From assembly GCA_965637545.1 (NCBI GenBank), contig OZ281496.1, positions 8,618,001 through 8,682,000 of the forward strand: a DNA stretch of 64,000 nucleotides, written 5' to 3'. Both the position numbers and the translations under genes were made by a program. Under the pieces are notes generated by a model. It saw only the letters and a list, made by a program, of their open reading frames with translations. It searched no databases and was not told the DNA's origin. Below are positions 2,514-59,535 of the stretch, piece after piece. Each line of letters begins with the position of its first letter. Position 1 is the stretch's first letter. The DNA is from Phallusia mammillata. Its lineage: Eukaryota.

Positions 2514-2625
2514 GAATCTGATTAAGTCTGGTTGGGTGATTGACAAGTTTGGAAAATCCATGTTGTGTTGCAGTGGAGTAAAGACCAGAATTAAACATAG
2601 TTGCTTTTGGCACACGTAGTGAGAC
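2500..2625 (-). mobile_element. Non-LTR retrotransposon (LINE) AP-endonuclease fragment
   Basis: Translates GFSKLVNHPTRLNQILYWI, the typical end of a LINE APE domain (QLVxxPTR...LD). Homologous to 27170-27420. Confidence 0.5.
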
Positions 2626-2712
2626 TTGCCAACATATACATAACCCGTGCATTTTTACTTCGAATATTGTACTTGTTGTGTGAATAACCATAGGCAAACA
2701 TTGCTAAAGTCA
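2625..2712 (-). pseudogene. Inverted fragment of orphan 7TM gene (end of TM1 to start of TM2)
   Basis: Minus strand reads LAMFAYGYSHNKYNIRSKNARVMYML, matching IAIFAYGSSHNKYNSGDRNARVMYMM of 50733-51611. Confidence 0.7.
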
Positions 2713-3256
2713 AGAAAGGGATAGTTTAGTTGTGTTTAGCATCGACCAAGCAAGTCTTTGAGAGGCAATTGTTTGGTTTTCAAGACTTGGACCGAACCCA
2801 TATACCAAGCGGTTGAACTCCATGATTTAAACCTTGATAAATCTAAATTTTCTGTTCAATTCGAAACAAAGGCACAGTGACATATGTGTCTTTGACGTAA
2901 CTTTGGTGCACAATTGTTGCAGAGTTTCACTTCAGTGTTTCAGTCGATTGTCAGAACGATCCGCTTTACAATAAGGAAGAGTATCCAGACGGTGGTTATT
3001 TAAAGAAGGAAGTATGACTTGGTATATGCTGTGATTCTCATAACTGCAGTTTAGTTCATTCCAACGTAAGTTAGTTTGTGCAGAAACCAGGCGTTGTTTG
3101 GCAGCAATAAAACCATTGGGATTCGTGACTTTTAGGGCACCTGTTTATGTTTACTAAATTTGAAAGCACTTTATCTCTTATCCGTTCACCTAGGCCTGGT
3201 TAGAGTAGGTTTTGACTTTTTGAACATAACGCTAAGTCTTATGTTGATTAACCGTA

Positions 3257-3916
3257 GTGGATGTTTATATTGGGCTTGACTTGGCTTTTATTATTGTGGG
3301 CTGCATTCCGAGATCAACGCGTGCATGTCAAATCCTAATGAAAATCACGCCCATCGTTATAGGTTTTAGTTTATGCTCAGTTTACACATTTCTGTGGTTC
3401 AAACAACGTTGCTTCTATAAAAGTTCGCTTTTGAATCAGCTTTACAACGGTCGGATTAAAGTTCTAAGTTAGTCGAGCATTGTCTGTCTGAATTTTAAAA
3501 CATTTACTGCATGCATTGCATACTCTATTACACAAAGATATCAGTCTTATGGGTGTGGGTGTACACATTTTGAAGGTAATGTTAAGTGGCCTTTGTTAGC
3601 AGGCAGTGCAATTGATATAGCAGGACAGTGGTTGCTTTTATTTCTTTTCCTCTATCCATTTAGATGCGCCCAGCAGGGAGTAAATGTTATTGCCGGGTTA
3701 CAAACGATGAAACGAACCGCTTTTATGTCATTACTTTGCATTTCAACCGATATTGTATCAATGTTTGCTAACTTGTATCTTGAGGTACAGCTATTTGCAG
3801 CAGCAATTGCTTGCAACCTATTAGCTGTTGTGTTAACGTTCGAAACTTGGAACGATATATTGAAATATCCTCTGTCAATTTTTGCAAGCAGTGAAACGGT
3901 TGATATCGAACACTGA
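3257..3916 (+). pseudogene. Orphan 7TM receptor-like pseudogene (TM1 to mid-TM2 missing)
   Basis: ORFs 3257-3472 and 3593-3916 are in the same frame, separated by TAG (3470-3472) where paralogs have W (VLSWSS). Carries family motifs YTFLWFKQRCFY, LFLFLYPF and LTFETW, plus the shared 3' flank. Confidence 0.85.
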
Positions 3917-5176
3917 GTTATTTAGTTTTTATAACATTATTGTTCGTCCACATTAATTGCTCGTGATTTTCGTGCATCCTAGTTTTCTGTTTCTCTTGAA
4001 ACGATCTATTGTCGCGTTGTGCTATCTTAATGACGATTTTTGCTTTCTACTTGTCGCATTGTGTATGTAATCTTGCTAGCAATAAATTAATTGGTATTGA
4101 AACTTACCTATTTTGCAAACATACCTGACTTTTAGACTGTATTTAGTATACTTCATTGTTTTGCAGCAGGGGTTGGCAACCCCTGGCACACATGCCAAGG
4201 TTGGCAGGTTGTTTTGCTGTATTTATGTTGAAGTACTAATTTAAACTTATACATTGCTTGTTACCAGTTCATCATTCAATAATAGCCTTACATTCGGCCT
4301 ACACGCATAAATTATGTTACTATTGATATATTACTATTGAGGTTTAAACGTTAGGTCGAACGAACTAAATAGGAATATTTTTATAAGATTTGCGTTTTTT
4401 CGGGTTGGGTGCGTACAGCTTTATTTGTTTTTGAAAAATGGGTTTGGTTCGGGCCTGACTTTTTCCCTGTCAGTAATTTTTTTTAAAAACAATAAGTTTC
4501 AAAGATATGAGTTGCAAACAACCATGCTTGAACAAAACGAACTTCTCGTTTTGGTGCTTGTGTGCAAGGCATGCAAGGGAAGGAAACAATTGCACGGTTA
4601 ATTGATTTGCATCGGCGACTGCGTGCTGGGCATCAACCCAATATTAAATGCAAACCTAATTGTTTCAGCTTGCTCGGTTTCATGTGGTTTAGGCCAGCTT
4701 AATCACAGACAAGTCTTTTGAAAGCATTTTTCAGAATTACAAGTATATTAAGTTTGATGTCGGTTAGTAAATACATAAGCGCTATATGTAGTTTAAAATG
4801 GTAAATGGCACAATTAGTGGATAATGACTAAAACGCGCAACAGCTGCATTGCAAATGGTTATGTAGCAACAGCTCATAAGAAAGGCAGTTTTGCGCACGG
4901 TGAGTATAATATGACTGGGCATAATTCGATTTCTTGTATGTTGTACATTTATTATGACCTGGTAGTATAGATGTGGCTGCCTATACTGACAGCTGGGTAA
5001 AGCGTAAAAGAGGTTTTGTTTTTAATATTATTGCCTTGGTTAATGTTAGATTTTTTACCTTACAGTTTGTGGTTAATTTGAAAACCAAGATCTAATTCTG
5101 AAGGCATAAAGTGACCAAAACCGATTATAAGTTAAAAAAGAAACAGAGAATACAAACAAGTGAAGATTGTATCAAC

Positions 5177-5496
5177 CAGGGGTGTGCAACCTGCGGCCCG
5201 CGGGCCAAATGCGGCCCGTTGATAATGGTTGTGCGGCCCGCGGAGACGCTGGAATTTTCTAATTTACTGGTAAACGATTCCAATTTTCATGTATTTTTGA
5301 ACAGATTAATGCGCCCGGTGCTATTTCTATGCGACCAAGCAATAATGCAACTATAAATAAATGCGACTTTTACTTGTTAACTCAATGTATAAGCATATTT
5401 TTTATGCAACAAAGTAAAATCAACTTGTGGTGCGGCCCGCGATCTAATTATGGTAATTGTATTTGGCCCCACAGTGACAAAGGTTGCACACCCCTG
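5177..5496. mobile_element. hAT-type MITE inserted upstream of the ZF1 coding start
   Basis: TIR caggggtgtgcaacc / ggttgcacacccctg; TSD gtatcaac / gtataaac; internal gcggcccgc repeats. Absent from the paralogous ZF leader at ~16.1 kb. Confidence 0.85.
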
Positions 5497-5554
5497 GTAT
5501 AAACAGCAAACGGAACAAGAACAGTTGATAGCAAAGAATACTGACAAACATACA

Positions 5555-6537
5555 ATGAAAAGTTGTGTAAAATCAGCAAACAAAAAATTTAAATGCAATT
5601 TATGTGAAAAATCATATACCCGAAAGTGTAATCTAAAACAACATTTGGTTACACACAATGGTGAAAAACGCTATCAGTGTGAGGTTTGCAAGAAAAAAGT
5701 TTTCACTAAACCAAATTTGAAAGCACACATGCTGACACACTCGGACAGAAAAAGACCACATAAGTGTGAAATTTGTGAAAAGTTTTTTTTGTCAGCTTCT
5801 GAATTAAAAATACATCAGGTATCGCACACTGGCGTTAAAGCATACAGTTGCAATATTTGCGAAAAGAAGTTTCAATTTCCAGGACATGTGAATCAACATA
5901 TGAGATGCCATTCAGGGGAACGACCATACAAATGCAATCTCTGCGACAAAAGCTACAACCATTCTTCACACCTTTCAAGACACATGCTTCATCACACCAA
6001 GGAAAATACCAAGTGTGTGAAAAATGTTTTACAGAGAAAAGGAGTTTGGACATACATCTTAATGTACACATGGGACTTAAACTGCATAAGTGTACAATAT
6101 GTCAGAAAGCATTTAGTTACCCAAGATCTCTAAGGAGCCACATGTTCATTCATAGTGACGTGAAACCACACAAGTGTAAGTTTTGTGAAAAGGAGTTTGC
6201 TTCGATAGGTGGTCTAAAACATCATATGGCGGCCCATAAAGAAGAAAAACCATTCAAGTGTCCCTCTTGTGGAAAAGGATTTCATCACATGCACGGTTTG
6301 AAACGACACAGTTTGACATACTCAGGAATAAAGGCTCACCAGTGTGACATTTGTGAAAAAAAGTTTGCCCTTTCGACAACATTGAAAAGACACCGAGAAG
6401 CTCACTTTGGAAATAAAAAGATTCAATGCAAAGTTTGTAAAAGTTACTTTATACGACTTGAAAACTTAAAGCTGCACTTGAAAAAAACCAACAAGGGTCG
6501 AAAATGTGCCAAAATTTTATATGACATCAACCTTTGA
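5555..6537 (+). pseudogene. C2H2 zinc-finger array ZF1 (~11 fingers) with frameshift
   Basis: Tandem CxxC...HxxxH fingers with TGEKP-like linkers run across ORFs 5450-6133 and 5848-6537. A ~10-nt deletion near 6002-6012 relative to paralog 16193 shifts the frame within finger 6. Finger 9 has H>Y. Confidence 0.85.
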
Positions 6538-7820: not shown

Positions 7821-7821
7821 C

Positions 7822-9400: not shown

Positions 9401-9562
9401 AGTCTACACGGGAATGCTTACAAACAGGTTTAATTCGGTACGGCGCTAAACGATACTTTTATCAAAACTTTCAGCAGCCATCTTGGACTCCAATTCAAAC
9501 GTAATCAGATGCTGTAAGATGATTTTAATACAACGTAACTTCAAACTGAACTGATTCAGAAT

Positions 9563-9795
9563 TGCCGGGTTACAACTGATAAAACGAACCGCATGTATGT
9601 CAATTCTATGCATTTCAACCGATATTGTAGCAATACTTGTTAAATCGTATTTAGAGGTTTAGAGGTTAGACGTATTTAGAGGCGTTCGCTTGCAACCTAG
9701 TAGCTGTTGTTTTAACGTTCGAAACTTGGAACGAAATATTGAAATATCCTCTGACACTTTTCACAGGACGGGAAATAGTTGATATCTCACACTAA
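9563..9795 (+). pseudogene. 3' fragment of orphan 7TM gene (TM6-TM7)
   Basis: Reads AGLQLIKRTACMSILCISTDIVAI...CNLVAVVLTFETWNEILKYPL with a disrupted middle, followed by the family 3' flank. Confidence 0.8.
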
Positions 9796-10889: not shown

Positions 10890-11030
10890 TGTTTGACGTT
10901 AGTTAGTTTGTGCTGAAACCTGTCGTGGTTTGGTAGCAATTAAAATTTTGGGGCATCATGACTTTTTGCAGCACCTTTTTGTATTACATAGGTTATGTTG
11001 AGACGAGTTGAGTTTGTTTCGTTTGGTGTC
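10890..11030 (+). promoter_or_regulatory. Conserved upstream block of the 7TM family
   Basis: gttagtttgtgcngaaacc...tttggnagcaat..aaa recurs at ~3065-3140 (+) and ~55340-55470 (-), each time on the 5' side of a 7TM copy. Confidence 0.5.
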
Positions 11031-11274
11031 AGAATATAGCAACACCATTACACTAAAACAGTCATCAGGCCTGAATCGTTATGGAGCGCAAGACAATTGG
11101 TGAATAATGGCTCAACGCGCTGAAAAAAAGCTAATACAAGAATAACTTGTCTTTTATTCAGTTTGCGGATGTCTACGTAGGAATACTGAATGCTTTGACA
11201 TTTTGGACAGAATATAACGTCTTAAATTGATTGAGAACTGTCGTATACCTTTTGGAATTTGTTCAAACTTGAAG

Positions 11275-12153
11275 ATGGAATCAAACACTTCCAATCTTAC
11301 TAACATCTATGTACGAACGAACAAATTTTCCCCTCAAAGAATTGCTTCGCTGACGATAGATACAACTGCACTTTTCGTTACCATTTACTTCACTATTGCA
11401 ATATTTGCCTATGGTTGTTCACACAACAAGTACAAAAGTGGAGATAGGAATTCACGGGTTATGTATATGTTGACAAGTGCAGCGTCTATCTTAGTGAACA
11501 TATACATTGTGTTTGACATCAGTTTTGTGAATGTGGGTTACACTGAAGGATCAACATATGTCTGTCAAATCCTAGAGAAAATTAAGCCCATGGTGCTAGC
11601 TTTCAGTTTCTGTACAGCTTACACATTTCTGTGGTTGAAACAACGTTGCTTCTATAAAAGTACGCTTTTGAATCACCTTTACAAAGCTTGGATTAAAGTA
11701 CTAAGTTGGTCGAGCATTGTCTTTTTGAGTTTAGGCGTATTGATTTCTTGCATTGGATACTCCATTACACAAAGAGTTCATTCAATTGGCTATGGATGCA
11801 TAAAAGTTAATGGAAATGTAAAATGGCCTTGGATAGCGGGAGGTGCAATTGATTTTGGGGGCCAGTGCTTGCTATTGTTTCTTTTCCTTTATCCATTCAA
11901 ATGCGCCCAGCAAGGAGTAAATGACATTGCCGGGTTACAAATGATAAAAAGAAGCGCTTTCTTGTCATTTCTGTGTATTTCAACCGATATTTTAGCAATC
12001 ATTGTCAGTAATAATTTGGACGTAGAGCTGTTTGCAGCAGCAACCAGTTGCAACGTAGTAGCTCTTGTTTTAACGTTTGAAACATGGAAAGAAATACTGA
12101 AGTCTCCTCTGTTACTTTTCACAAGACGGGAAACCCTTGACATCCAAAAGTGA
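11275..12153 (+). CDS. Intronless orphan 7TM (GPCR-like) membrane protein, 292 aa
   Basis: ATG at 11275 (the TTG start at 11227 is not conserved in the paralog). Seven hydrophobic segments, N-terminal sequons NTS and NLT, Cys at the top of TM3 (YVCQ) and in ECL2 (GYGC). Full-length paralog at 50733-51611. Confidence 0.9.
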   Translation: MESNTSNLTNIYVRTNKFSPQRIASLTIDTTALFVTIYFTIAIFAYGCSHNKYKSGDRNSRVMYMLTSAASILVNIYIVFDISFVNVGYTEGSTYVCQILEKIKPMVLAFSFCTAYTFLWLKQRCFYKSTLLNHLYKAWIKVLSWSSIVFLSLGVLISCIGYSITQRVHSIGYGCIKVNGNVKWPWIAGGAIDFGGQCLLLFLFLYPFKCAQQGVNDIAGLQMIKRSAFLSFLCISTDILAIIVSNNLDVELFAAATSCNVVALVLTFETWKEILKSPLLLFTRRETLDIQK

Positions 12154-12712
12154 TTTGTTTTTGTTTTTTAGTGACATTATTGTCCACATTGACTAATTGC
12201 TGATGATTTAAGGCACACTAGTTTTGTATGATAGTTTTCTGTTGCTTTTTTTTCGGTTTCTACTTGTCGCATAGTGTATGTAGTCTTGCTAGAAATAAAT
12301 AAATGCACAAACATCAGGGTATTGTTGATGCTTGGTTCAAATAAAGTTCCACAGTTGTGGAAATTATAGCATGGCTTGATTAAAGGGGATTTTGAGATCC
12401 AAGATGGCTGCTGAAAGTCAGAAATCTTTTTTTTTGCTGAAAGTACCGAATCAGGGCTGTTTGTAAGCATTCCCGTGTAGACTCGAAAACAATGTCAGGC
12501 TTACTAACATCAGACCGTATTGCCGATGGGTGGTGCAAAAGCACATAAGTCTAAGAAAAGACAAGTGAACACTTTAGACAATTGGTGTTATGCGTGTTAA
12601 GGCTGTACCTTTTAATGTTTTCTAAATGCAATAGTATTTGTTTCTGTTAACAAGTCTCATTTTTAAATGCATTTACATTTCGGACAAAATGTTAATTTTA
12701 ATATTTTTTCGA

Positions 12713-13233
12713 ACCGTAGTATACGTTTGTGGTTTTGCTGAAACCTAAAAGACTAATTCAAACACTTTTAATGCTGGCTGAAAATAGAAAGTTGGTCGAG
12801 TATTGTCTTTCTGAGTTTGGGCATGTTTACTTCTTGCATTGGGTATTTGATTACTCGAAGAATTCAGTCATTTGGACATGGATGCATAAAGATTGCTGGA
12901 AATGTAGAGTGGCCTTTGATAGTGGGAGATGCAATTGATTTTGGGGGCCAGTGCTTACTTTTATTTCTTTTCCTTTATCCATTCACATGTGCCCAGCAAG
13001 AAGCATTTGGCATTGCCGCGTTACAAATGATAAAACAAAGCGCTTTCTTGTCGCTTCTTTGCATTTCAACAGATATTGTGGGAATACTTATTAACTTGCA
13101 TGTGGAGGTTCATCTATTTGCAGCAGCAATTTCTTGCAACCTAGTAGCTCTTGTTTTAACGTTCGAAACGTGGAAAGAAATATTGAAATATCCTCTGTCA
13201 CTTTTTACATGGTGTGAAAAAGTTGATATCTAA
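12713..13233 (+). pseudogene. 7TM pseudogene with internal deletion (N-terminus to TM4)
   Basis: Family 5' leader gaaccgtagtatacgttt...ctgaaac and a degraded start (tcaaacact) are joined almost directly to SWSSIVFLSLG (~12789). TM4-TM7 are open to the stop at 13233. Confidence 0.8.
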
Positions 13234-16192: not shown

Positions 16193-17035
16193 ATGGAAAA
16201 TTGTGTAAAAACTGCAACCAAAGAATTTGAATGCAATTTGTGTCAAAAATCGTTTACGCGAAAGTTTACTCTGAAACAACACGCTGCTACGCACACTGGA
16301 GAAAAACGCTATCAATGCGAGGTTTGCCAGAAAAAAGTTTTCACTAAAACGCTTTTGAAATCACACATGCTGACACATACGGATAGAAAAAGACCACATA
16401 AGTGTGAAATTTGTGATAAAGTTTTTTTGTCTGCTTCTGAATTGAAAAGACACAAGGTATCGCACACTGGTGTGAAACCATACAGTTGCGACATTTGCAA
16501 AAAGAAGTTTCAAACCTCAGGACATGTGAAGCAACATATGAAAAGCCATTCAGAAGAACGACCATACAAGTGCAAGCTCTGCGAAAAAAGTTACACCCAA
16601 TCTTCACACCTTTCAAGACACATGTTTCATCACACCGAGGAACAACCACATAAGTGTGGAGTGTGTGAAAAATCTTTTACAGAAAGAAGGTGTTTGGACA
16701 TACATCTTAATGTACACGTGGGTCTTAAACTGCATAAATGTACAATATGTCAGAATTTGAAGGCATTCAAATACCCAAGAACTCCAAGGAACCACATGCT
16801 TACTCATAGCAAGTAAAACCTCACAAGTGTAAGTTTTTTGAAAAAGAGTTTGCGTGAAGAAATGGTCTCAATAAACACATGTTGAGTCATAAAGAAGGAA
16901 AGCCCTTTAAATGTCCTTCTTGTGAAAAAGGATTCAATCATTTTTAAATTTCAAAAAACTACACAGCTTGACACATTCAGGAATAAAGGTTCACCAATCA
17001 CCAGTGTGAAATATGTGAGAAAAAGTTTGCCAAAC
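16193..17035 (+). pseudogene. C2H2 zinc-finger array ZF2 (open for ~7 fingers, then decayed)
   Basis: ORF 16193-16816 (207 aa) of tandem fingers. Downstream sequence still aligns to ZF1/ZF3 fingers 8-10 but has a frameshift and stops (aagtaaaacc, tgcgtgaaga). Confidence 0.85.
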
Positions 17036-44852: not shown

Positions 44853-44854
44853 TA

Positions 44855-47191
44855 CTCTTTGCCCCACAGTCGGGGCAATCAGGGACAGTGTCCCTAATTG
44901 CCCCACCTTTCCCATTTTACTTGTATTGAAGCTTTAGATTTCTATTTTTGTTCAACACGCTTCTTAAGCTTAAACTGGTGGCATTTAACTAATTACAAGA
45001 CAACATGTCTACTTGCCTAGAAATCAGTCTTTTTGATGCAATGCATCGAAATCTGAGATTTATATTAAACAGCTGGCACAAAACAAGGTCTCTAAACATA
45101 TCAAAACATTTTCTCACTACAGAAATAACATTGGAATGAAGTTTTAATTAACAACTAAAAATCACAAAAAATATATACCGGTACCGGTAAAACAGAACAG
45201 TGACAATTTTAAGACCGGTAGAACATAACTTCTAACTTTTCAAGGAGCATTTTAACAAAAATAACACACAAATTTTCCTTTGCCACTGTAACTAGAACAT
45301 TTATCACGGCACCAGCATTTGCACACACTACATTCAATCCAGTCCTCAGTCAGTGGTTCATGGTACAATTCAAGGCAAAAAATGCACCCATAAACTTTCT
45401 TCGCATACAGTTTCTTTTAGCTGGTCTTTGTTGGATTCTTGCAATTTGGATTTTGTTTTTTTGGTTTTGGTTTGCTTCCAGCTGCCACTAAACTGTTCTT
45501 AAATAGTGATGATGTTAAAATTTCTGATCTTTTGGATTTTCTTTACCGACAGGAGAGTTTAGCATGAGGCAATGGCGATATGTCTTGCACAGAAACTTTT
45601 CGTGGCGTTGCCAATCATTGCATCGAAGAACTGCAGCAAGGCTGATTATCAACCGCCTGTTGCAAAACGTCGGCTGTGGCTGTTTCAAAAAGGTCACCAG
45701 AAGTGGATGCTTCTGCATTTGCGTTAGCCACAACAGGGTCACTAGTTGAAGTACTGACTGGGTTTAGTGCAGCACTTTCTATCACAACTGGTAACATATC
45801 ATTGCTTATTTCTGCAGACACTTGGACTTTACAAGCTGGTTGCTTCAGGCTGGCGGAGACTTATGTTTGGATTTCTCATCATAAAATTTCCCAGCCAGTC
45901 TTTTCCAGCTTTCTTTTTACTGTCATTAAAAGGCACTGTGATGTTGTTTGCATTGGCAAGCTCATAAGCAAGTTTACAGAATGTGTCACTACACAAGCCA
46001 AAAAACATCTTTTGCATTTGCAATACATGTTCTACAAGCTCTTTTTCCAAATTTAATGGTAAAGCAGGCACAAACGACCCCAGCTTAATTTGGCCTGGTC
46101 TTGAAACGTTTTCTTTAAAATGTCTTTCAAGAGTGCTTTTGGAAATTTTGTATGTTTCAGCAGCTTTTCTAAAAGATAATTTTTTGGAACGGATGTCATC
46201 CAAAGTTTGCTCTAAGTCTTGCTTCGAGTACTGAGCAATTGCAGTTTTACGTTTATAATTTCTAACCATGATAGTGTAACTTTGACAAATTGCAATATAA
46301 AGATGATATTTAGTTTTAAATTGGCCTGGAAAACAAACAGTTTTGAAGAACTGCTTAGCAAAATTCATTGCATATTTAATTAATAAACACATATTTAGTA
46401 CTAGTCCCAAGATTTTGGGGTTCAAGATTTGAATGCCCAAGACTGGGATTTTTGGTGCCCATGATTTTGGGGGTTCGGAATTTTTTCATGCTACAAAAAT
46501 ACAAGCAGACATGTTAATACGGTAGGCAATTCCGCCATGTTATTACTGACAGTAGGCTACAAGTCAATTTTATGATTACAACAAATTTTAAAATAGCTTA
46601 GTAGGCTATGCATTTACCGAGCTATCCTTACTCAGCTGTATGTACTCTAACCTTATAGGAATACCAGTATGGTACTGAGTAACCTATGCCTATGATCAAA
46701 CTAGTTAAGCTCAGGCTCGGCTGATGGCCAATAGTTTCAAGTGAAAGCAAGAAATGCACTGCTGGGGCAAAGCGGGACAATGTCCGACATGTCCCGCTTT
46801 GCCCCCATTGCTCTGTCCCGATTTGCCCCCAACGTACAGCCTCCGAAATTACCGTATTTGAAAAACTAAACAAGAGTTTAGGAAAACATTTTTTTCAATG
46901 TTTGATCACCATGTTCTAGTGTATCTGATGGAACATAGCCAAGTTCAACTTTTATGCAGGTGAAGGCTAACTTAGATGATTTCTGAAACCTTTTCTTATA
47001 GTGAATTAAGCTAAAGGAATATTTCTTTCATAACTGAACGAATGTAAACCAGTTCTTCAAACTTTTCCATCAACTGCTGGACAAGATGGCCGACTTTGCA
47101 TAAAAACGGATAGGGGGCGCTAACGACAATATCCGCGAAAATAATCAGCTGTCCCTCTTTGCCCCGTGTCCCGCTTAGCCCCACTTTCCCC
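44855..47191 (-). mobile_element. pogo/Tigger-like DNA transposon, DDE domain deleted
   Basis: MVRNYKRKT...HTH (psq) + CENP-B-type HTH...LRQPEATSL (46269-45829); C-terminal DISPLP, SEILTSS and PHD-like CIFC..YHEPLTEDWIECSVCKCWCRDKC (~45290-45400). Right terminus ccccactttcccc followed by TA; left end degraded. Confidence 0.82.
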
Positions 47192-48375: not shown

Positions 48376-48591
48376 TTAGACATCAACCGTTTCACTTCTT
48401 GTAAAAAGTGACGAAGGATATTTCAATATTTCTTTACACGTTTTAAACGTTAAAACAAGAGCTACTAGGTTACAAGTAATTGCTACTGCAAACAGCTCTA
48501 CGTCCAAATACCTATTAACAATTATTGCTATAATATCGGTTGAAAAGCAAAGTAGGGTCATAAAGGCGGTCCTTTTTGTCATTTGTAACAC
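48376..48591 (-). pseudogene. 3' fragment of orphan 7TM gene (TM6-TM7)
   Basis: LQMTKRTAFMTLLCFSTDII...CNLVALVLTF..KEILKYP; the family 3' flank follows. Confidence 0.8.
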
Positions 48592-48661
48592 AGCAGAAGC
48601 AAGTGATACCCAACCCGGTGTTTCAAAGGATTTATATCAGAATCAGTGATTTGCTCTAATA

Positions 48662-49075
48662 CAGTGGTTCCCAACCTTTTTGTAGTCACGGACCCCTTTT
48701 ATAAATTTTATAGGTCCGCGGACCCCCAACGCAATTTAGTCCAGTTATGTTTTTTTGTTTCCTGCATTATGCGTTATTATACTTTCGCTTATCAGGGCAG
48801 AATTTCGATCAACCTTCACAGTCCCTCAATCTCAATAAAGTTCTGTACTGTAGCAGTCAATGCAACGAAGAGATACATTTTCTGGTATACAATACTTGAA
48901 ACAAAGCACAATAAGTTCTATTGTTAATGTGTGTTGTGATGTCCCAATGGAGGTAACAATTACTAGTTTTCCTGATCCAAGGGTTTGATAAACAGTTTGC
49001 ACTCAGATGCAGGATTGTAAAAACGGTTTGGGAACTTACAAATATTGTCCATGAACCCCAGGTTGGGAACCACTG
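48662..49075. mobile_element. hAT-type MITE
   Basis: TIR cagtggttcccaacc / ggttgggaaccactg; TSD ctctaata / ctctcata. Confidence 0.85.
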
Positions 49076-50732
49076 CTCTCATACAAGGGATGCAAAACTA
49101 TGGCCTGCGGCTTTATTTTATCCGACCTGCGAGAGTCTTGGTTTTCAGTATATATCTTGGAAAAACTAAGGCTTTAGTTAACCATTGAAAGTAACAGTAT
49201 TTCCTGCAACAACATGTAAGATTAACTCCACCTAGTTTCACAGAATCTAAAAGGATGATACAAAAGTTTGTTTGTTTCATCACAGATAATATTAAATTAT
49301 CAATGCTCTCTTCATTGTGCGGGAACAAACGCCTTTCTATTGTTAATTGTGATGAAATAAAGAAATAAAATAAATATTTGTGATGAAATAAAGAGTTTGG
49401 CTGGTAGAGGACATTCTTTAAATATACTATTTGTTGGTCCTGCAAAAGCGCTTAGCAGAAACGTTTGGAACGGAGCTGCGTCAGGGATTGTAACCTACGT
49501 AGCCGTCAGATGTTATTTTTATCCCGCTCGTCGTGAAAAAAGTTTGTTTATCTCTGCTGTATTGAAAAAAGCACCGAAAGGTGTTTGTAACCATCAGGTA
49601 TGCCGTTGGGTACCAATGGTTGGAAAACACGCAGGCATTGCCAAGAACACTACAATTTTAAAAATCAAAACGTCGTGGAGTTTTATACACAAATATTTGC
49701 TTGTATGTAGAGCCGTGCATTGTCCACAAATATACAACGGATTTGCTATTCTTACAGCTAACGTCACAGTGTTACCAGAAGATGAACCTCGAAGTAAACT
49801 CCCCATGACGCCACAAATGAATCGGAATTTCGTTATGTGAAAATTAGGAAGCAGGTTTATTTGGGGTTTAACTCGCGTATCAGATAGTGCAAATTTAAAT
49901 GCAAATCAACAACAATATGAGAAAGGAGTTAACTATGCTGCATTTTAAAAATCAAAACATTTCGCGGCATTTATATCTGTTACGTAATAACCATCAATTA
50001 TCAAACTATATGGTTGTGGCATCAATAAATTAATTGTTACATCATAATTTTGGCAAAATAAAAAAAAATGTTTATCGTTTAACGCTATGTTGTTGTGTTT
50101 GGCATGAAATAAAACGTTTTTAGTGCAGACATTTCAGTTTCTCTTTTCTTGTAGCGGAAGTTCGACATGGATGCAAACTCTCAATGACACCACAAATAAA
50201 TGGTTCCAACTCTCGTGCCGTTGGTTTTGTGCAAATGAGGAACTTGGTTAAACCGGGGTTTTGTAGATTTCAGTATATTTATGACTGTGCAGTCACGGAA
50301 TAAAGTCAGATAGGGAATATGTGGGTTCGCATACGAAAACTGGAAAAAGATCACCTTAAATTCAAATCCAAACGCAGGCGAAATTTAATACAACGAAGCT
50401 TCAACTTGTATTCATGCAGAAACGTATGAATCAATTTTTTAGTAGTTTATTCCATCATCCCTTTATATCAATACTACATTTTACCCAAACTACTGTGGAA
50501 CGTTGTTCACTCCAAACATTAACAATAGCCGGAAGCTTGTGCAATTGAGTTATTTATAACATGGAAACCTAGAATAACGCAAACAACGAAATAACACATC
50601 ACGACAATAGATCTTTTTTTAAAAAAATACTAACAAGCAGAAAACTATAATACAAAGTTAGGATGCATGAAAACACAAGCAATTAGTCAATGTGGACTTA
50701 TAACGATGTAATAAAAAATAAACAATTGACTG

Positions 50733-51611
50733 CTAGATATCAACTGTGTCATTTCTTGTCAAAAGTGACAGGGGATATTTCAATATTTCTTTCCACGTTT
50801 CGAACGTTAAAACAAGAGCTACAAGGTTGCAAGTATTTGCTGCAGCAAACAGCTGTATTTCCAGACGAAAGTTACAAAGTGTTGCTACAATATCGGATAA
50901 AATGCAAAGAATTGACATACATGCGGTTCGTTTGATCATTTGTAACCCGGCAATGGCATTTACTCCTTGTTGGGCGCATTTAAATGGATAGAGGAAAAGA
51001 AATAAAAGTATGCACTGGCCCCAAAAATCAATTATACTTCCCACAATCCAAGGCCACACATTACTATCAACATTTCGGCATATATATCCAAATGACTGAA
51101 CTCTTTGTGTAATCGAATATTCAATGACAGCAGTAAATATGCCCAAACTCAGAAAGAAAATGCTCGACCAACTTAGTACTTTAATCCAACCTTTGTAAAG
51201 GTGATTCAAAAGCGTACATTCGTAGAAGCAACGTTGTTTAAACCACAGAAATGTGTAAACTGAGCATAAACTAAAACCTAGAACTATGGGCATGATTTTC
51301 ATTAAAGTTTGACATGCATATATTGATCCGGGAATGTAACCCACATTTATTAAACATATGTCAAGCACAGTGTATATGTTGACTAAAATAGAAGTTACAC
51401 TTGTCATCATATACATAACCCGTGCATTTCTATCTCCACTATTGTACTTGTTGTGTGAAGAACCATAGGCAAATATTGCAATAATCAAGTAAATGGTAAC
51501 GCATAGTGCAGTTGTGTCTATCGTCAGCCAAGCAATTCTTTGATTGGAATATTTGGTTGCACCCTTCGTTCTTTCTTCTATGTCTGTGACATTGGAAGTG
51601 TTTGATTCCAT
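50733..51611 (-). CDS. Intronless orphan 7TM (GPCR-like) membrane protein, 292 aa
   Basis: Intact ORF; seven hydrophobic segments; sequons NTS and NVT; Cys at the top of TM3 (YACQ) and in ECL2 (GYIC); paralog of 11275-12153. Confidence 0.9.
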   Translation of the reverse strand: MESNTSNVTDIEERTKGATKYSNQRIAWLTIDTTALCVTIYLIIAIFAYGSSHNKYNSGDRNARVMYMMTSVTSILVNIYTVLDICLINVGYIPGSIYACQTLMKIMPIVLGFSLCSVYTFLWFKQRCFYECTLLNHLYKGWIKVLSWSSIFFLSLGIFTAVIEYSITQRVQSFGYICRNVDSNVWPWIVGSIIDFWGQCILLFLFLYPFKCAQQGVNAIAGLQMIKRTACMSILCILSDIVATLCNFRLEIQLFAAANTCNLVALVLTFETWKEILKYPLSLLTRNDTVDI

Positions 51612-52589
51612 TTTTAAGTTTCAGTAAAATTCAAAACGTATAACTACGGTTCTCAATCAAAAAATGACTTACTATTCTGTCTGTAAAGTTGCAGCGAATG
51701 CAAAGCTGACTCCGGTTAATAACTGAGCATAGCACAGACTTAAGTATCTACTTCACGAGTTTTATTACAAGCAACATAACAAACAGACGAACACAGATAA
51801 CTTACTTTTACAAGTTCAACGTAACATCAAGTTGACGAGCGATTCGTACATTAAGCGAATAATGACAGAATATAATATTCGCACTTTGACCAGAATGAGA
51901 CTTGGAATTATAATCGGAATTAGAATGAATCTCAATGTTTGTGGTCCGATATTTATACTCAAAAAATTCGATAGCGATCTTGATTGAACAACAGATGATG
52001 AAACCCGAGAGATAAGAAATTGGACACACGGGGATTAGAAATCAATGTACCAAAGTCATTACGCTTGATTAACTCAAGGTTAATAGGGTCGTCCAAAAAG
52101 GGAAAAATATAAATTACAAAAAGCAATCTCGAGAAAAGAACAGATGTTTGCTGATTAATCCGGAGAGACCACGTGATTTGAACACGTGATTTGATGCAAA
52201 GTCAATACATTCAGTAATCAGGCCTAGGTAAACAGAAAAAAGAGACAAATTACTTTTGTATTCGCATTCTAATACGGTGTAGCAGCAGCGTGTTCAACCA
52301 TCCACCAATGGTGCTCGCCACTTTTTTGCGCTTTGCTATTTTTTTCGCCACTCTACCAACCCACAACAGATAGAAGCAAGCGAAGAGAGTTCATCTTTTA
52401 ACCAACAATGTCCGGATGCTCATTAATAAACAAGCTTAGGTTCATTGGTGAATTGTAAAACGAGAAGTGAAACTACGTCACAGTTTCGTCAGTTTCCTAT
52501 GATCTAGTCTTTTCTCAAAACAAGTTTGTGGCGAACTGAATAACACATAGTATACAACAAAATCAACACTTGAAAATGTGGACAATCTA

Positions 52590-52850
52590 TTGAAACCATA
52601 CCTCACAGCAGCCCAACATTTAGCTAAATTTTGATAGGTGAAACAAAGAGCACTAAGACCAAATATAAATAAATGGACCTCTAAAAATGCTAGCACTCAG
52701 GCTTTTTGAGTTGAGGGATAGTATTATCAATAAAATCCAAGGAAACTAACTTAAAACTTTTTCCTGTCCCTAGCCCTTTTTGGAAGCTAAATAAGTAATT
52801 CAGCTCTTTGCGCCACCTACCAAAATTTAGCTGTGCTACCTCGAAATACG
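52590..52850. repeat. Third, diverged copy of the taggtggcgcaaagagc inverted-repeat element
   Basis: taggtgaaacaaagagc ... gctctttgcgccaccta, with the flanking tttagctaaattt motif. Confidence 0.5.
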
Positions 52851-53500
52851 GTTTATGTTGTGCTGCCCCAAAAAATATGACACTTGGTTCGGTCAAAACA
52901 ACAAAAAAGAAAAAAAAGTTGCAAATGGGATGGATTTGGTTATAACATATAAGCTACATGTTGCAGCGGAAACTTGGCTGATATATGTCTTGCTTTTGTC
53001 GTGACGCATCAAAATATTCATCCGCGAGGCGTCATGTGCTTTGAACGGCAGGCCCCACAAGACGGGGGTGCAGCCGGTGCGCCGCACCGGGGCCCATGAG
53101 AGTCCAGGGGACAATGAGGATCCAGGGGACGCATAATTATTCGGTTAAAAATTGCAGGGTCAAATATGTATGTATTTTTAAAATTTGGTCTGATCATACC
53201 CATGTGAACAAAACACGTTGTTTTAAACAAGCTAGCAGTGATCGGGTCTCGAGACTTCAGTCATCATTTTCAAAGATTTGACTTGAGTTTTAGTAGTGAA
53301 AAGACCTGACTTGACTTGTTGCAACAAAAAGGAATTTTTTCACCTGATGAATTATTCAGGTGTCTTCAACTAACAACACCAGAACTTTACCGTGCGATTC
53401 GGAGATATTTGTGCTTAATTTTCACGTAACGAAGTCCTTGCTATGTGGAAAAACTTTCTTTCGTTGGCATTTTGTGCTGTAGTTGCCGTTTGGTTTAAGC

Positions 53501-53908
53501 CAGAGGTCACCAAACTTGACCACTGCGGGTCAGATAAGTTTAACAATGATTCGCGAGGGCCGCATAGTTTAGCGCCTTGCCCCACGAGGCGATTTTCATG
53601 GTCCCTTTTTCAATCCTATTTGAAGTCTAGTAATACGACTTTTAAATTGTATAGTAAGTCCCATCTTACCAGCAATGCTTCTAAATTACGTCACACGTGA
53701 CAAATGAAGGCAGTTGTTCGCGGACAATTAACACACTTCAAAGAGCGTTGTAATCCTACGGAACTATATAACATATTAATTGTACATGTTATGGCAGAAA
53801 AACTTTCGTAAGGAGTAAACTAACTTTTAAATGTTACAAAGTTATCGAAACCAAAAAATGTGGTCGCGGGCCGGATCCGACCCGCAGGCGGTAGTTTGGT
53901 GACCCCTG
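53501..53908. mobile_element. hAT-type MITE
   Basis: TIR cagaggtcaccaaact / agtttggtgacccctg; TSD poorly conserved. Confidence 0.7.
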
Positions 53909-53956
53909 GTTTCATTTGCTTTTAAGCGTTTACTTTGCTGCACAAACGGTGTAGCG

Positions 53957-54401
53957 CAGGGGTGGGCAAACTTTTTAGTGCAAGGGCCGCATTCAAAAGG
54001 TCTTAATCTCAGGGGTCCGCATAGTATTTCACCAACGACCGCCAATTGCTTGCTTGTTTTTTTTTTTTTTTTTTAAATAACTGGTGTAAAGAATTAGGTT
54101 TGTATCCTTTATATATACCATTTAAAGCCTCATTAAATGCTCAGATTAAAAATTTCTTACTTGACGCATAAGTGTACTAAACGGAGCTAACTGTTTATGA
54201 CGTCATAATCTGTATTGTGACGATTGGGGTGCCTGTTCTTTCGCATTGTTTGCACACAGTAAGCGGATAAAAAGTCTGGCGCAAACTATTTGGCAAATTT
54301 AATTTAGTTACGTCACCGCCGCCAGCACGTGTATTTCAACATACATGGTCACAGCACAAACACGTCTCCGCGGCCGTATGGCCGCATGTTGTGCACCCCT
54401 G
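53957..54401. mobile_element. hAT-type MITE (possibly chimeric)
   Basis: Ends caggggtgggcaaac / gttgtgcacccctg with ggccgc motifs; no TSD. Confidence 0.6.
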
Positions 54402-57400
54402 ATTTTGCCCAAAATATTAACGGAGTATATTTTCAGCTATGTGCAAATACGTTTGTTGTCACTGAAATTATAGGACAAACATTGGTTGAAACGCCACAAT
54501 TGCAATTGTTTCAAAATAAACAAGCATTTGTTGGAACATAGGCTACACCACGTATTTTTGTCAATAAATTCTTGCGCCAACATTAAAAAAGCGAGCCGCG
54601 TTTAGTTTCCATTTTTAGGTGTTGTGCGGGTCTGTGTTAACGATTCTAAAGCCGTGTTTAATGTCCGTTTGCAAAGTATTGCAACGACCTAAACTTGATC
54701 CTAAACGTGAACAAGGTTTGGCGTCAACAGTGCAAAGTGGGCTGTATTTGAAAACGTGAAACATTTTTACATTCGCGTTTCGCTTTACTTTTATTTACCT
54801 TCATCAAACGCTTTTACTTTTATTTACCTTTATCGAATGAAGAAATTGTGTTAAGTGACGATTCGCAAAGTAACATGGCAGAAACAACAGGCTAAACCAC
54901 GTAAAAAGTATCTGTGTTTAGTTCCAAAGTAAGTAGCCTATGGTACGGGTAAGATACTGCACATGGTACAGGCATCAGCAATTCGCACCCCCGGTATTTT
55001 TTAAATACTATTCAGCGTTATTAACATTCTCTTTAAAATTTACTAATATTTGGCGGGCCGCACAAACTCCTTCGCCGGGCCGCATGCAGTAAAATATAGG
55101 AATTTTAGGATTTTGAACTCTTAAAGGTTTGACGTTTTTGTCCAAGCTATTTAATGAGTGTGCTAATTACCATTGGCAAACATGCTTTTGTTTGTTCTGA
55201 TTGACGAATGAACGTATTAAATGCTGGATTATCTGCGCATAAACTGTAGTGCAACTTAACAAACTATTCTCGAAAGTGTTCAAGGGGGCCCTAGAAATTG
55301 ACTGCACCAGCATGTTTTTCTTCTCCTCAGGGCCCTGACGAAAACACAAAACGAAACAAACTCAACTCGGCTCAACATAACTCATTAACATAAAAAGGCC
55401 CAAAAAAGTCCTGAAGTCTCAAAGTTTTTATTGCTACCAAACAGCCTGGTTTCAGCACAAACTAACTAACTTCAGACAATGATATGGGGTCATCGTTGTA
55501 ATTGCAAACCGTTCATACTAGTTGATGTTATCGTTACCTTCCGCATATGACTGTACCGATTCAAGATGCGCGCTTGCTGTGCAATCTTCAGTACCATGGG
55601 AAGAAGACCTTGCACTCATGACAATTTGCATTTTCCAATGCCTGTCCTTCTGCTTGCGGAAGGATAGTGAATAAATGAAGGGCCCGGCGCCAGTAATAAA
55701 TTACCCGAAGGGTTTATTGTTGCGTATTAAGTGGTGTTTCCTTAAGAAGGAAGTTCCTATACCTATGAAAAGGTTCGTAACAAAATTTGAAACCTGTTTT
55801 GTGTTGACGCCTTTAAACTGGAGAAAGTAAAAAAAGTAAAATAAAGTTGTTACTAATTCCTTTGCTGGGGCGTAGCGCTTTGTTGCGAAATGCAATCCAC
55901 ACGCTTCTCATTAAATCAGCGTCAAAGTGGTGAGATATGATGTACATTGAAATGTCTCTTTTGGCGATAATGTAAGAATAATTGACGAAGCAACAGTGCT
56001 TCCTAATCAGCGAGGGCTTGTAGCAGGTTGCCGTTTCTCTTTGGTGTGTTTAATATGTATTCATTTCTTTGCTTGGTTTGTCATACTTTTACACCCGTTG
56101 TTTCACAGAACGACTGAGGATGCCCTTTTTGGGGTGAAATATATATCGTTTAACAACCTTGTTGACTGATTTTGATTAGGAAGCACTGTTGCTTCGTCAA
56201 TTATTCTTACATATAATTTAAAATATAATCAGTGATCGTCGACAAAAAAGATGCCCACTACTTGCGGGATAGATCCTGTACCAAACACTAAATTTTGGCG
56301 ATAATATAATACTTAACCAGACCAGCCAAACCCACTTTTCCGGAAATTTACTTAAGTCCAATTCATATTCACCGTGAAATGTTTAAAAAAGAAATTTTCT
56401 TTGTGCCGCGCCAGACGATTGCAACATGTCACAAATCGACCGATCAGACCACCACGTTTGATCACGTGAATTGATTTGACAAACGAGCTTTGTCTAACTA
56501 ATGACAAAATTTGAAGTTTCATCAAAAGCTTCCAGTATTGTTTTTTTGGCCTATTAACAATAAATGATTTCAAACGCCGTAGTTCATAGGGTGATTTTGT
56601 CTTGCTTGCATCTCATGTGTAACTAGTGTCGTTTGGCAAGCGCAGGAAATAACCCTTCATTAATCTCATATGGGAAGTCTTCCCACGCATGATGGAATAC
56701 TGACGCGTTGCTATCACCTATAGTGATGTCACAATGCCTGTTGACGTTGATCTGTCACCAACAATGTTTGCAACTAGCCGTTCACCTAATGTTAATACTT
56801 TGCCGTGATGTATCTTGAAACACTTTGTATCACGATTGCCACATTTATGAGAAAGGGTAAACTATCCAACTTTACCAACATATCTAATTGCTCATTTTAA
56901 TACAAGATTAAGATACATTAACACCGTTTTTGTGTCCTCAGCTTAGCCAATCAGGCTGTCATGTTTGATCACGTGACTTAGTGTATCTTAATATTAGACA
57001 ATGGTAAAAAATCAGGTATATTAGAATCATGGGCGCAACTAGGGGGGCAGGTTCGTCGGCATGCCAGGTCCCTTTTCTATCGACGTTATTGCGTATAACG
57101 GCTCTCGTACTGCGCCAAAAACACGTTCGTTCGCATCAAAGCTAAAAAAACTTGGCGCCGGTGCAGCAGTAAATCGCTTCATCGGCATGTATTGCGATGG
57201 TAAAAACGAAGTTTCTGCGATGTATTTATACAGCAACCTAAATAACCGCAACAACGATCTTTGTTGGAACTTGAAAACGTATATACATGTAAACACACAA
57301 AAATAAAAGGTTTATCGGCGTGGAGCTTCAGCCAAAAATCTTTCAATAACTTGTTTGTAATTTACGTGTCAGTTCCTGGTCCACAATCCGAAACAGACTT

Positions 57401-57566: not shown

Positions 57567-57761
57567 CAGTTCTCAAACTGTGCGTCGTTTCAATTTTCCA
57601 AGGGCGTCGCAGAATAGTTCCGTTTCGTGGCTTTTTGTTGTTGTATCAATAAATACAACTTTAATAATCAGTTTCCTCATTCACTTTTATTTTCTGGTGC
57701 GTCGCAAGTCCTGAAAACTTTTCCAGGGGCGTCGCAACAAAAAAAGGTTTGAGAACCACTG
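57567..57761. mobile_element. hAT-type MITE
   Basis: Ends cagttctcaaac / gtttgagaaccactg; perfect TSD gattaacg. Confidence 0.85.
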
Positions 57762-58180
57762 GATTAACGTGTAGACACCCAGTCGAACGAGTTTATTTGT
57801 TACGAAACAATGCCTTAGTTTAAAACGTTAATATACTTTTTACAATGGGCTTTGTGACTTACAAGTGTTACTTTTTCACGGCATTCGAAGCCGTACAATC
57901 CAAGGACGAAACCCAGTTTTTTTTAGATTATTAGTGGAAAAGCGCGTCACGTTATTCGACCAATCTATGATACGTCGTTCAAAAAAACTACTGTTCAGCC
58001 TTGTTAAAGCACTGATAGCGTTTTGATGTGGCACAGCAAACAATAAGGCTGTGGTAACTCTTTATAATTTCGAATAAACGAAAACGTTAATTGTATACAC
58101 TTTATGCAGGACGTCGTTGTAATTACAAACCGTTTATTCTATTTAATGTTTTTATTAACTTTTCGGCGTACGCTGCAACC

Positions 58181-58219
58181 GAATACAAAGGTATCGTAGA
58201 TGCCTTCGTAAGAATTCCA
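58181..58219 (+). other. Short insertion matching ADP/ATP translocase (SLC25A4/5/6 family) coding sequence
   Basis: Translates (E)YKGIVDAFVRIP, the ANT first-repeat matrix-loop motif YKGIxDxxVRIP. The core is absent from the paralogous non-coding flank at ~55545-55575. Confidence 0.55.
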
Positions 58220-58511
58220 GGATGTGCGATTGCTGTGCAATCTTCAATACCTGCGAAAGAAGGCCTTGCGCTCATGACAAATTGTATAAAGTTCTTAATC
58301 GGTTTGAAACAATGATTCCTTTTTTAAAATCTCTTACCCCAAGTATGTTTGAATGAAAAATGAGATTATTGTAAATTGAAACTAACGACCCTTTAACGCC
58401 GTGCACTGGCGTATTGGTTATGGAAGTGCAAAAAATAGTTTCAATTCGTACTGACACTTTCCTTCAATCTGAAGTTTCCCTACTACGAAGGTGTAATGTG
58501 TTTATAGGGAA

Positions 58512-58640
58512 GGCAACGGTGCTTGTGATTCGACGAGTGCACCGCTGAAACTGTGTAGCTCAGTTGGCAGAGCGTGAGTCGCGAAAACACTCCTGTCACC
58601 GCATTGAAAGGTTGTCAGGTGGTACGCGGTCCGTAGAAGT
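58512..58640 (+). ncRNA. tRNA-related structured element, copy 3
   Basis: A-box TAGCTCAGTTGGCAGAGC (from 58556); hairpins cggtg-cttgt/acgag-caccg, gagt/actc and cctg..acc/ggt..cagg are shared with the 10-kb copy. Confidence 0.42.
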
Positions 58641-58885
58641 TTGTGTCGCAAACAATAGCCATACTTCAATTTACGAACGTTAGTCGAACACGAACATCAA
58701 CAACACCCGGAGTAATTTATTGTTAGCAAGATTTCATACACAATGCGACAAGTAGAAACCGAAAATCCTTATTGAGATAGCACAACACGACAACAGATCG
58801 CTTCAAAAGAAGCAGAAAACTAGGGTGCATGAAAACCACGAGCAATTAATGAGGACTGGCAATAATGTTATGAATAGTAAACAAC

Positions 58886-59535
58886 TCAGTGTTCGATATT
58901 AACTGTTTCACTTCTTGTAAAAATTGACAGAGAATATTTCAATATATCGTCCCAAGTTTCAAACGTTAACACAACAGCTACTAGGTTACAAGCAATAGTT
59001 GCTGCAAATAGCTGTACCTCAAGATACAAGTGAGCAAACATTGCTAATATATCGGTTAAAATGCAAAGAAGTGACATAAAAGCGGTTCGTTTCATTATTT
59101 GTAACTCGGAAATAATATTTACTCCTTGCTGGGTGCATTTAATTGGATAGAGGAAAAGAAATAAAAGTAAGCACTGTCCTGCTGTGTCAATTGCACTACC
59201 CACTAACAAAGGCCACTAAACATTTTCATTAACCTTTATGCATCCATATCCAAATGACTGACATCTTTGAGTCATCAAGTATGCAATGCCAGAAGAAGAT
59301 ACGCCCAAACTCAAAAAGACAATGCTCCACCAACTTAGTACTTTGATCCAACCTTTGTAAAGGTGATTCAAAAGCGTACTTTTATAGAAACAGCGGTTGT
59401 TTAAACCACAGAAATGTGTAAACTGCGCATGCACTAAAACCTGTCACCACGGTCTTTATTTTCACTAGGGTTTGAGATGTAAATGATGATCTTGGTTTGT
59501 TACCAACAATGACAAAAGATATGTCAAGTGCAATG
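58886..59535 (-). pseudogene. Orphan 7TM pseudogene (5'-truncated)
   Basis: Begins in mid-TM2; frameshift near 59391-59398 (KQR region); TAG at 59216-59218 before WP; C-terminus SETVNIEH resembles the 3257 copy. Confidence 0.85.

Follow-up and report, generated by a model that had tools for sequence, protein, structure and literature searches.

Seven-helix receptor-like genes at the end of a Phallusia mammillata tandem array: a probable lineage-specific branch of the tunicate family that includes KH.C3.516

Tunicates are the closest living relatives of vertebrates. A survey of receptors in Ciona listed neither olfactory nor TAS2 receptors (Kamesh et al. 2008, PMC2396169), which leaves the chemical sense of tunicate larvae and adults to be explained. 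The closest described system is the Ciona gene KH.C3.516, which encodes a seven-transmembrane (7TM) protein "of unresolved phylogeny" for which BLAST found no relatives beyond the tunicates (Johnson et al. 2020, EvoDevo 11:15, PMC7397655). The same study showed that KH.C3.516 ranks second in enrichment among the transcripts of the axial columnar cells in the Ciona larval papillae and that its green fluorescent protein (GFP) fusion gathers at the exposed apical tips of papilla cells, included P. mammillata sequences in its family tree, and proposed the "tunicate-specific 7TM family" as chemoreceptors analogous to vertebrate olfactory receptors. In the later literature, KH.C3.516 is mentioned once each in one paper and its preprint. 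In this study, we analyzed a 64,000-nucleotide stretch of the genome of Phallusia mammillata (contig C3, positions 8618001 to 8682000; hereafter the window), which carries a cluster of 7TM genes and gene remnants. Two of these genes, A and B, are intact, and each encodes a protein of 292 amino acids (aa).

Our verdict from sequence comparison is that the window genes most probably form a lineage-specific subfamily of the known, uncharacterized tunicate family that includes KH.C3.516. In the supplement sequences of KH.C3.516 and KH.C3.722, which were read by eye and are unscored, all invariant positions of the window family occur in the same order and with the same spacing. The common signature consists of a Cys at the top of transmembrane helix 3 (TM3), W-x2-Q-x3-Y, G-C in extracellular loop 2 (ECL2), Q-x5-L-x3-P, R-x7-C-x3-D, and an F before helix 8. 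The window genes and the published family also have in common that they are seven-helix proteins of ~290 to 340 aa, lie in tandem arrays, and have no matches outside tunicates. They differ in that the window genes appear to represent another subfamily, ~20 to 30% identical to the Ciona members, and in that expression and apical localization are known for KH.C3.516, whereas the window genes are known from sequence. KH.C3.516 was absent among the 206 family proteins that were fetched, and none of the 12-residue words taken from five Ciona matches was found in the supplement of Johnson et al. A first-pass annotation of the window, made from its letters alone, had described an orphan, uncharacterized family that could have a chemosensory or non-self-sensing function; nothing in the analysis favors the second of these. 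The lack of a class assignment stands, but the family had already been described, and its chemoreceptor function already proposed, in that one 2020 paper.

The reading that we favor, with a probability of about 0.6, is that the window is the end of a tandem array of a tunicate-restricted seven-helix receptor family, KH.C3.516 included, that constitutes a chemoreceptor-like repertoire. According to this reading, the constant inner face of the proteins would engage a single transducer shared by all of them, a heterotrimeric G protein being the most likely, while the variable outer pocket would bind different external ligands; the array would then act as a chemoreceptor-like repertoire, and the family as a whole may have a chemosensory role. 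A conserved core is evident across the family. C100, Q126, and C178 are invariant in 71 diverse members, and W123, Y130, Q199, L205, P209, R228, and F270 are conserved in at least 90% of them. The two cysteines, which the first-pass annotation had picked out in the window copies, lie at the top of TM3 and in the ECL2 hairpin, which is the place of the disulfide in classes A, B, C, and F of the G protein-coupled receptors (GPCRs), and they are likely to form a C100-C178 disulfide bond here. The remaining conserved residues gather toward the cytoplasmic ends of TM3, TM5, and TM6 and ahead of helix 8, with the inward motifs W-x-[KR]-Q-x3-Y at the end of TM3, Y-P-[FL] at the end of TM5, and [KR]-R at the start of TM6. 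All invariant family positions are present in both intact window copies.

Variation is distributed quite differently over the two faces of the protein. We defined an outward half, comprising the N terminus, the extracellular loops (ECLs), and the outer helix halves, and an inward half made up of the remainder. Proteins A and B differ at 57 of 150 outward-half residues versus 29 of 142 inward-half residues (Fisher p = 0.0013). Across the 10 intact paralogs, alignment columns of the outward half have a mean entropy of 0.88 bits versus 0.46 bits for those of the inward half (Mann-Whitney p = 3e-8), a contrast that was reached by only 4 of 291 circular shifts. The most variable regions are ECL3, outer TM3, ECL1, outer TM6, and ECL2, and the least variable are inner TM5, intracellular loop 1, and inner TM7. 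Pairwise Nei-Gojobori comparison of the ten full-length paralogs gave a mean synonymous divergence (dS) of 0.37 and an omega of 0.46 overall, 0.60 outward, and 0.33 inward; the GY codon model in IQ-TREE gave 0.48 overall and the same values for the two halves (0.60 and 0.33). The outward half diverges about twice as fast as the inward half, and purifying selection is clear, being weaker on the presumed ligand side. The earlier observation that differences between the intact copies cluster on the outer side while the inner loops are nearly invariant is thus borne out by residue counts, entropy, and omega, and the variation is uneven between the halves rather than uniform.

The window covers the right-hand end of a tandem array that spans ~190 kb of contig C3 (8.49 to 8.68 Mb). 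In genome searches, which covered the 240-Mb assembly, protein A matched at least 115 places. The window's own clade (62 to 76% identity to A) is located mostly at C3 8.49 to 8.68 Mb, with a few copies elsewhere on C3, and comprises ten full-length ATG-to-stop genes, three genes whose start is shortened or lost, two genes interrupted by stops, and ~25 fragments. Remoter clusters, with 21 to 45% identity, lie at C1 4.53 to 4.55 Mb and at C3 24.3, 25.7, 26.8, and 27.1 Mb, and ~50 more uninterrupted frames of 265 to 450 aa are spread over C1 to C8. Tandem birth and death with many broken copies, the chemoreceptor-like pattern of clustering and pseudogenes noted earlier in the window, is therefore what the genome search found as well.

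Outside this genome, an exhaustive profile search of public protein collections returned 1269 cluster representatives at E <= 1e-3, 1030 of them at E <= 1e-10. Word-index protein searches returned 0, 5, and 1 matches; this method is insensitive for a hydrophobic family, and its blanks are uninformative. We examined 32 representatives (30 looked up and 2 from the word search), and all 12 that carry a species name are tunicates, namely P. mammillata, Ciona intestinalis, another Ciona species, Clavelina lepadiformis, and Styela clava. The other examined representatives come from metagenome or run assemblies without a taxon, and one such contig looks eukaryotic; the JGI and ENA contigs that hold one of these representatives carry no neighboring genes that would point to a taxon. 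These sampled named representatives, together with the published statement of Johnson et al. (2020), support a family restricted to tunicates, in agreement with the lineage specificity suggested for it in the annotation. One P. mammillata protein in the collections, CAB3262857.1, is identical at 289 of 290 residues to a family open reading frame (ORF) on contig C2. In a quick maximum-likelihood tree, both window genes fell into a six-gene clade drawn entirely from this genome (SH-aLRT 99), whereas other members from this genome grouped with single Ciona proteins: L042 grouped with LOC100179835 (support 95), L043 with LOC144745713 in a clade that is supported but unresolved, and L049 with H2YQW7 (clade support 93). 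The family thus appears to mix conserved orthologue lines with lineage-specific expansions, and the window subfamily, which is confined to this genome in the sample, is probably an expansion within the Phallusia lineage.

Structure prediction supports a GPCR-like seven-helix bundle. An AlphaFold2 model of the gene A protein, built from a 28-member alignment (pLDDT 85, pTM 0.82), contains seven predicted TM helices (residues 23-52, 61-91, 97-131, 141-168, 186-215, 220-250, and 254-269), an ECL2 folded as a beta hairpin (171-180), and helix 8 (273-288), with the N terminus and its sequons outside. The ~292-aa protein with seven hydrophobic segments that had been read from the sequence is thus modeled as seven helices plus helix 8, and both intact copies carry the N-terminal sequons reported for them, NTS plus NVT or NLT. 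When the model was compared with the PDB by Foldseek, the top 50 matches were all GPCRs, of classes A and C, though with modest scores (TM-score 0.5 to 0.59, E about 1e-3). The closest cluster in the ESM Atlas was from Chordata and without a Pfam family (TM 0.77), and a feature search likewise returned Chordata clusters with no common Pfam family (scores 0.93 to 0.96).

The loci in the window were collected from a six-frame ORF list and by tblastn with both intact proteins; the window sequence contains zero N. The features of the family are as follows, with aa numbers referring to the protein.

2588-2803, minus strand: inverted 5' coding piece, aa 11-80 (tblastn E = 1e-8, with 3 stops in the longer alignment), placed by blastn upstream of the promoter-like block
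3064-3219, plus strand: promoter-like/5' leader homology block of the same decayed copy as 3254-3913 (blastn matches upstream of A, at 52198-52256, and upstream of B, at 10896-10980)
3254-3913, plus strand: decayed copy, aa 73-292, with one in-frame TAG and the 3' untranslated region (UTR) kept (tblastn E = 5e-82, 65% identity; 3' flank homology)
9561-9792, plus strand: 5'-truncated remnant covering aa 218-292, its frame shifted between aa 252 and 255 (tblastn in two frames; 3' flank homology including AATAAA)
11206-11274, plus strand: 5' leader of intact copy B, conserved (start of the homology with copy A by blastn)
11275-12153, plus strand: intact gene B, a single coding exon with an open frame for a predicted seven-helix protein (70% identity to A; AATAAA at 12294)
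12775-13230, plus strand: 5'-truncated copy, aa 139-292, without internal stop, immediately behind gene B (tblastn E = 8e-63; flank analysis)
43900-44013, minus strand: marginal possible ninth remnant, aa 232-271, 42% identity (tblastn E = 0.011; weak, may be chance)
48379-48600, minus strand: 5'-truncated remnant, aa 219-292 (tblastn E = 2e-23; 3' flank homology)
50733-51611, minus strand: intact gene A, a single coding exon with an open frame for a predicted seven-helix protein, the copy used for the AlphaFold2 model
51685-52197, no strand assigned: repeat of 513 bp resembling a solo long terminal repeat (LTR), with a 5-bp target duplication (AAAGT), 73 bp upstream of the gene A ATG (joint 51684/52198 in run X1 and DNA run X14)
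58889-59537, minus strand: decayed copy covering aa 77-292, broken by one frameshift and one stop (tblastn in two frames, E = 6e-72; 3' flank homology)

All eight loci of the first-pass annotation, two intact and six decayed, were found again by tblastn, but the count of genes has to be lowered by one. Nucleotide flank comparison showed that the pieces at 2588-2803 and 3254-3913 are one gene split by an inversion, which has left the inverted 5' coding part upstream of the gene's own promoter-like block. The window therefore holds seven genes plus the marginal remnant at 43900-44013.

The copies multiply by DNA-level tandem duplication and decay quickly. They share a coding exon of 879 nt, ~160 nt of upstream sequence that is conserved across 10 array members, and a 3' UTR of ~140 to 190 nt per gene. 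Their 3' flanks are homologous for at least 230 nt beyond the stop codon, and in 5 of the 7 copies compared this homology crosses the shared AATAAA and continues past it; no poly(A) tail was found in the 3' flanks of these seven copies. Retroposition was considered as the copying route because the decayed pieces that include 3' sequence keep their 3' end and most lack the 5' end. It is ruled out by the flank homology past the shared poly(A) signal, the absence of poly(A) tails, and the shared upstream sequence, which together indicate duplication at the DNA level.

Two further features of the broken copies were observed. The decayed pieces with 3' sequence (3254-3913, 9561-9792, 12775-13230, 48379-48600, and 58889-59537) all reach the last codon and the 3' UTR, whereas their 5' part is gone, a one-sided loss that retroposition does not explain, poly(A) tails being absent. 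In addition, the receptor upstream (promoter-like) block occurs by itself, with no adjoining coding sequence, at 55387-55470 on the minus strand, and this may be the last trace of another lost copy.

The 513-bp repeat upstream of gene A is polymorphic, being absent from other haplotypes, and is present in at least 46 copies in the genome, often as same-strand pairs ~2.5 kb apart; it is probably a solo LTR. Contigs of three small probable-RNA runs lie on the gene A body and leader (50773-51684), and these runs have no contigs on the neighboring intervals 50073-50663 or 52437-53815, while a probable DNA run covers every bin around gene A. One of the probable-RNA runs contains a joint between 51583 and 51806, with GT..AG on the gene A strand and the upstream exon inside the repeat, and such a joint on the gene strand argues that this run is RNA. 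Exon-by-exon tracing of this form on the displayed sequence showed that the repeat supplies a GTAAGT splice donor, which is joined to a cryptic acceptor inside the gene A coding region. The other haplotype has an unspliced leader, and the alternative allele of gene A differs from the reference at 6 nonsynonymous and 2 synonymous codons. The description of these genes as intronless accordingly holds for the coding region but not for the 5' leader, which is spliced at copy A in one run. In the DNA run, summed depth rises to 15,000 to 45,000 at 48497-49087 and 53816-54012, compared with about 120 to 750 in most other bins, which marks high-copy repeats beside gene A.

Several results weigh against reading the array as a chemoreceptor-like repertoire. 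The family has no sequence link to a known receptor class: Pfam gave no match in ~50 members at thresholds that ranged, by scan, from E <= 0.1 to 10; the family profile found nothing among PDB sequences at E <= 10; and hhalign aligned it to a class A profile from the same genome with a probability of 0.7%, compared with 99.5% for a control in which the same class A profile was aligned to an independent class A gene. The class A switches DRY, CWxP, and NPxxY are absent. Family alignments, which confirm the TM3 end FLWxKQRxFY and the lack of DRY and NPxxY read earlier from the window, show instead W-x-[KR]-Q-x3-Y, C-x3-D, and N-x3-N...F. An exhaustive structural comparison by VIA-align gave Z scores of 14 to 16.6 alike for microbial rhodopsins, Ste2, viral UL78, GABA-B, GPR55, and TMEM87A; by this measure the modeled bundle is generic, and no receptor class stands out. 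Omega is below 1 everywhere, and no positive selection was shown. The sole member with known expression, KH.C3.516, is expressed in myoepithelial papilla cells and not in classical sensory neurons (PMC7397655). Gene A is probably transcribed, but no run is recorded as RNA to prove it, and the sole spliced form seen uses the cryptic acceptor 28 nt after the ATG, skipping the start codon, so that this isoform cannot encode the full protein. A predicted complex of the gene A protein with an intronless Gi-like G-alpha protein, L081, scored 0.34 versus 0.45 for the control, a result that is evidence neither way.

The L081 gene (C2:7464183-7465169, minus strand) and a second G-alpha locus, L082 (C7:5827832-5828818, plus strand), are both full-length, intronless, and Gi-like. 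They encode 357 aa and ~357 aa, respectively, each with an N-terminal MGC, and their C-terminal tails, which end in ...VFGSG and ...GLMTE, are atypical for Gi. Both may have originated as retrogenes or may act as lineage-specific transducers, and any link to the receptor family is speculation.

The comparison with known receptor systems shows partial likeness in each case. Class A GPCRs (7tm_1) share with the family the predicted seven-helix fold, including helix 8 and a hairpin in ECL2, the positions of the TM3-ECL2 cysteines, and a basic residue close to where TM3 reaches the cytoplasm, but membership in class A (PF00001) was rejected on the Pfam blank and the hhalign result with its control. 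The genome contains 69 7tm_1 matches, none of which coincides with a family locus. The profile-profile comparison with class A, a kind of check that had been proposed in the first-pass annotation, yielded no class assignment. In their mode of evolution the genes resemble vertebrate olfactory receptors (ORs) and TAS2Rs, with a single coding exon, clusters, pseudogenes, lineage expansions, and a variable ligand-facing and a constant cytoplasmic half; unlike in mode, ORs and TAS2Rs have no sequence or profile similarity to the window family, and their motifs differ. The nematode Sr* superfamilies are similar in being large, phylum-restricted, seven-helix families with fast turnover that are missed by standard GPCR models, and one ESM Atlas cluster of the window family is automatically named "Serpentine receptor class gamma." Nematode genes carry introns, however, and none of the Pfam Sr* families reached significance for the family (best, Srsx at E = 0.68 on one member). 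The automatic database names conflict with one another, ranging from "Taste receptor type 2" to "GPCR family 1 profile," "GPCR family 3 profile," and the serpentine class.

Could the proteins be receptors for internal signals, such as peptides, lipids, transmitters, or developmental and immune cues, with the array reflecting relaxed constraint after duplication? The expression of KH.C3.516 in contractile non-neuronal papilla cells, for which Johnson et al. consider a transmitter ligand from neighboring neurons (PMC7397655), agrees with this, as do the one-to-one relationship of several members with Ciona proteins, expected of conserved endogenous receptors, and the omega values below 1 throughout. 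We nevertheless regard it as unlikely, since turnover is fast in the window clade (2 intact versus 5 to 6 broken copies, and ~10 intact among ~40 array pieces), divergence is focused on the outward half, and the family has many dozens of genes, a combination that is the pattern of exteroceptive families rather than of hormone receptors. It is less probable still that these are seven-helix proteins that do not signal via G proteins, but act as a channel, a transporter, or a trafficking or adhesion factor. Microbial rhodopsins, Ste2, UL78, and TMEM87A are the best VIA-align rows, at the same Z as true GPCRs; DRY, NPxxY, and CWxP are missing; and the G-alpha complex prediction, being evidence neither way, lends no help. 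Several hallmarks of GPCRs are nonetheless there: the N terminus with its sequons lies outside, the Cys pair of TM3 and ECL2 is invariant, ECL2 forms a hairpin, and helix 8 is present. All of the top 50 Foldseek matches are GPCRs, and the inner face, with its conserved basic and aromatic residues, is compatible with a cytoplasmic partner common to the family. The Lys that binds retinal in microbial type I rhodopsins has no counterpart in TM7 (254-269), nor is one conserved there across the family, and the VIA-align Z of 16.6 to microbial rhodopsins reflects the generic bundle.

A very diverged relationship to TAS2R, by which the family would be the tunicate branch of the bitter-taste lineage, was prompted by the UniRef entry of a Clavelina member automatically named "Taste receptor type 2." A TAS2R cluster is also among the nearest named structural neighbors in the ESM Atlas (TM-score 0.67, level with fungal and other clusters), and both groups have ~300 aa, a single coding exon, a clustered arrangement, and neither DRY nor NPxxY. 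The Pfam TAS2R model (PF05296), however, matched none of the ~50 members at those same thresholds and nothing genome-wide (best E = 0.3, 16.7 bits against a cut-off of 22.2 bits, and not at a family locus), no TAS2R chain appeared in the top 50 of either PDB search, Foldseek or VIA-align, and the other automatic names contradict this one; TAS2R membership was rejected on the Pfam results, and we hold such a descent to be very improbable. Equally hard to credit is the idea that all window copies are functionally dead or dying, the array being in decay and some frames still open by chance. Of the seven or eight loci, five or six are indeed broken, the spliced form from the haplotype with the repeat bypasses the start codon of copy A, and the alternative allele has more nonsynonymous than synonymous differences. 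But the omega values of the 10 full-length paralogs (0.48 overall and 0.33 in the inner half, at a dS of ~0.37) mean clear purifying selection, both copies keep every invariant family position, and the repeat insertion is missing from other haplotypes. The reading of the window as the end of an array of receptor genes forming a chemoreceptor-like repertoire remains the one that we prefer.

Genes and elements of other kinds are interspersed with the receptor copies. A rhodopsin-class 7TM domain (Pfam 7tm_1, E = 4.5e-10) following LDL-receptor class A repeats is encoded at 17384-20112 on the minus strand, extending to about 30238, and the gene belongs to the tunicate expansion of LDLa-repeat, relaxin-receptor-like GPCRs that was reported from Ciona in 2008 (PMC2396169). 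Among the receptor copies lie three C2H2 zinc-finger genes or pieces, paralogous to one another, at 5450-6537 (plus strand), 16193-16816 (plus strand), and 38607-39338 (minus strand), and two overlapping frames in the first of these suggest a frameshift. An 830-aa ORF at 32931-35423 (plus strand) has a weak reverse-transcriptase match (RVT_1, E = 3e-5). A 203-aa ORF at 45829-46440 (minus strand) contains an HTH_psq domain (E = 4e-9) and is probably the N-terminal DNA-binding part of a pogo/Tigger-type transposase. Finally, a 243-aa ORF at 61517-62248 (minus strand) has one C2H2-like finger near its N terminus and no Pfam match.

Collectively, our results overturn nothing, and their central idea is already in print; what they add is a fold modeled with confidence, a measure of how strongly the outward and inward faces differ, and a distinction between conserved subfamilies with Ciona orthologues and recent expansions in one lineage. 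The genes are targets for de-orphaning and expression studies, and a tunicate-only, GPCR-like family of many dozens of genes is an obvious candidate for tunicate chemical sensing. Whether this family might be the main chemoreceptor repertoire of tunicates, a seven-helix class without a traceable link to the known GPCR classes, is a more tentative matter, and we think it possible but somewhat doubtful. If it were so, the family would take the place of the olfactory, vomeronasal, and bitter-taste receptor genes that tunicates lack, and the two intronless Gi-like G-alpha genes with unusual C termini might be dedicated transducers. The fast-evolving, species-restricted arrays, of which the window would be one end, would then fit the senses of each species to the particular cues that it uses for settlement, food, or gametes.

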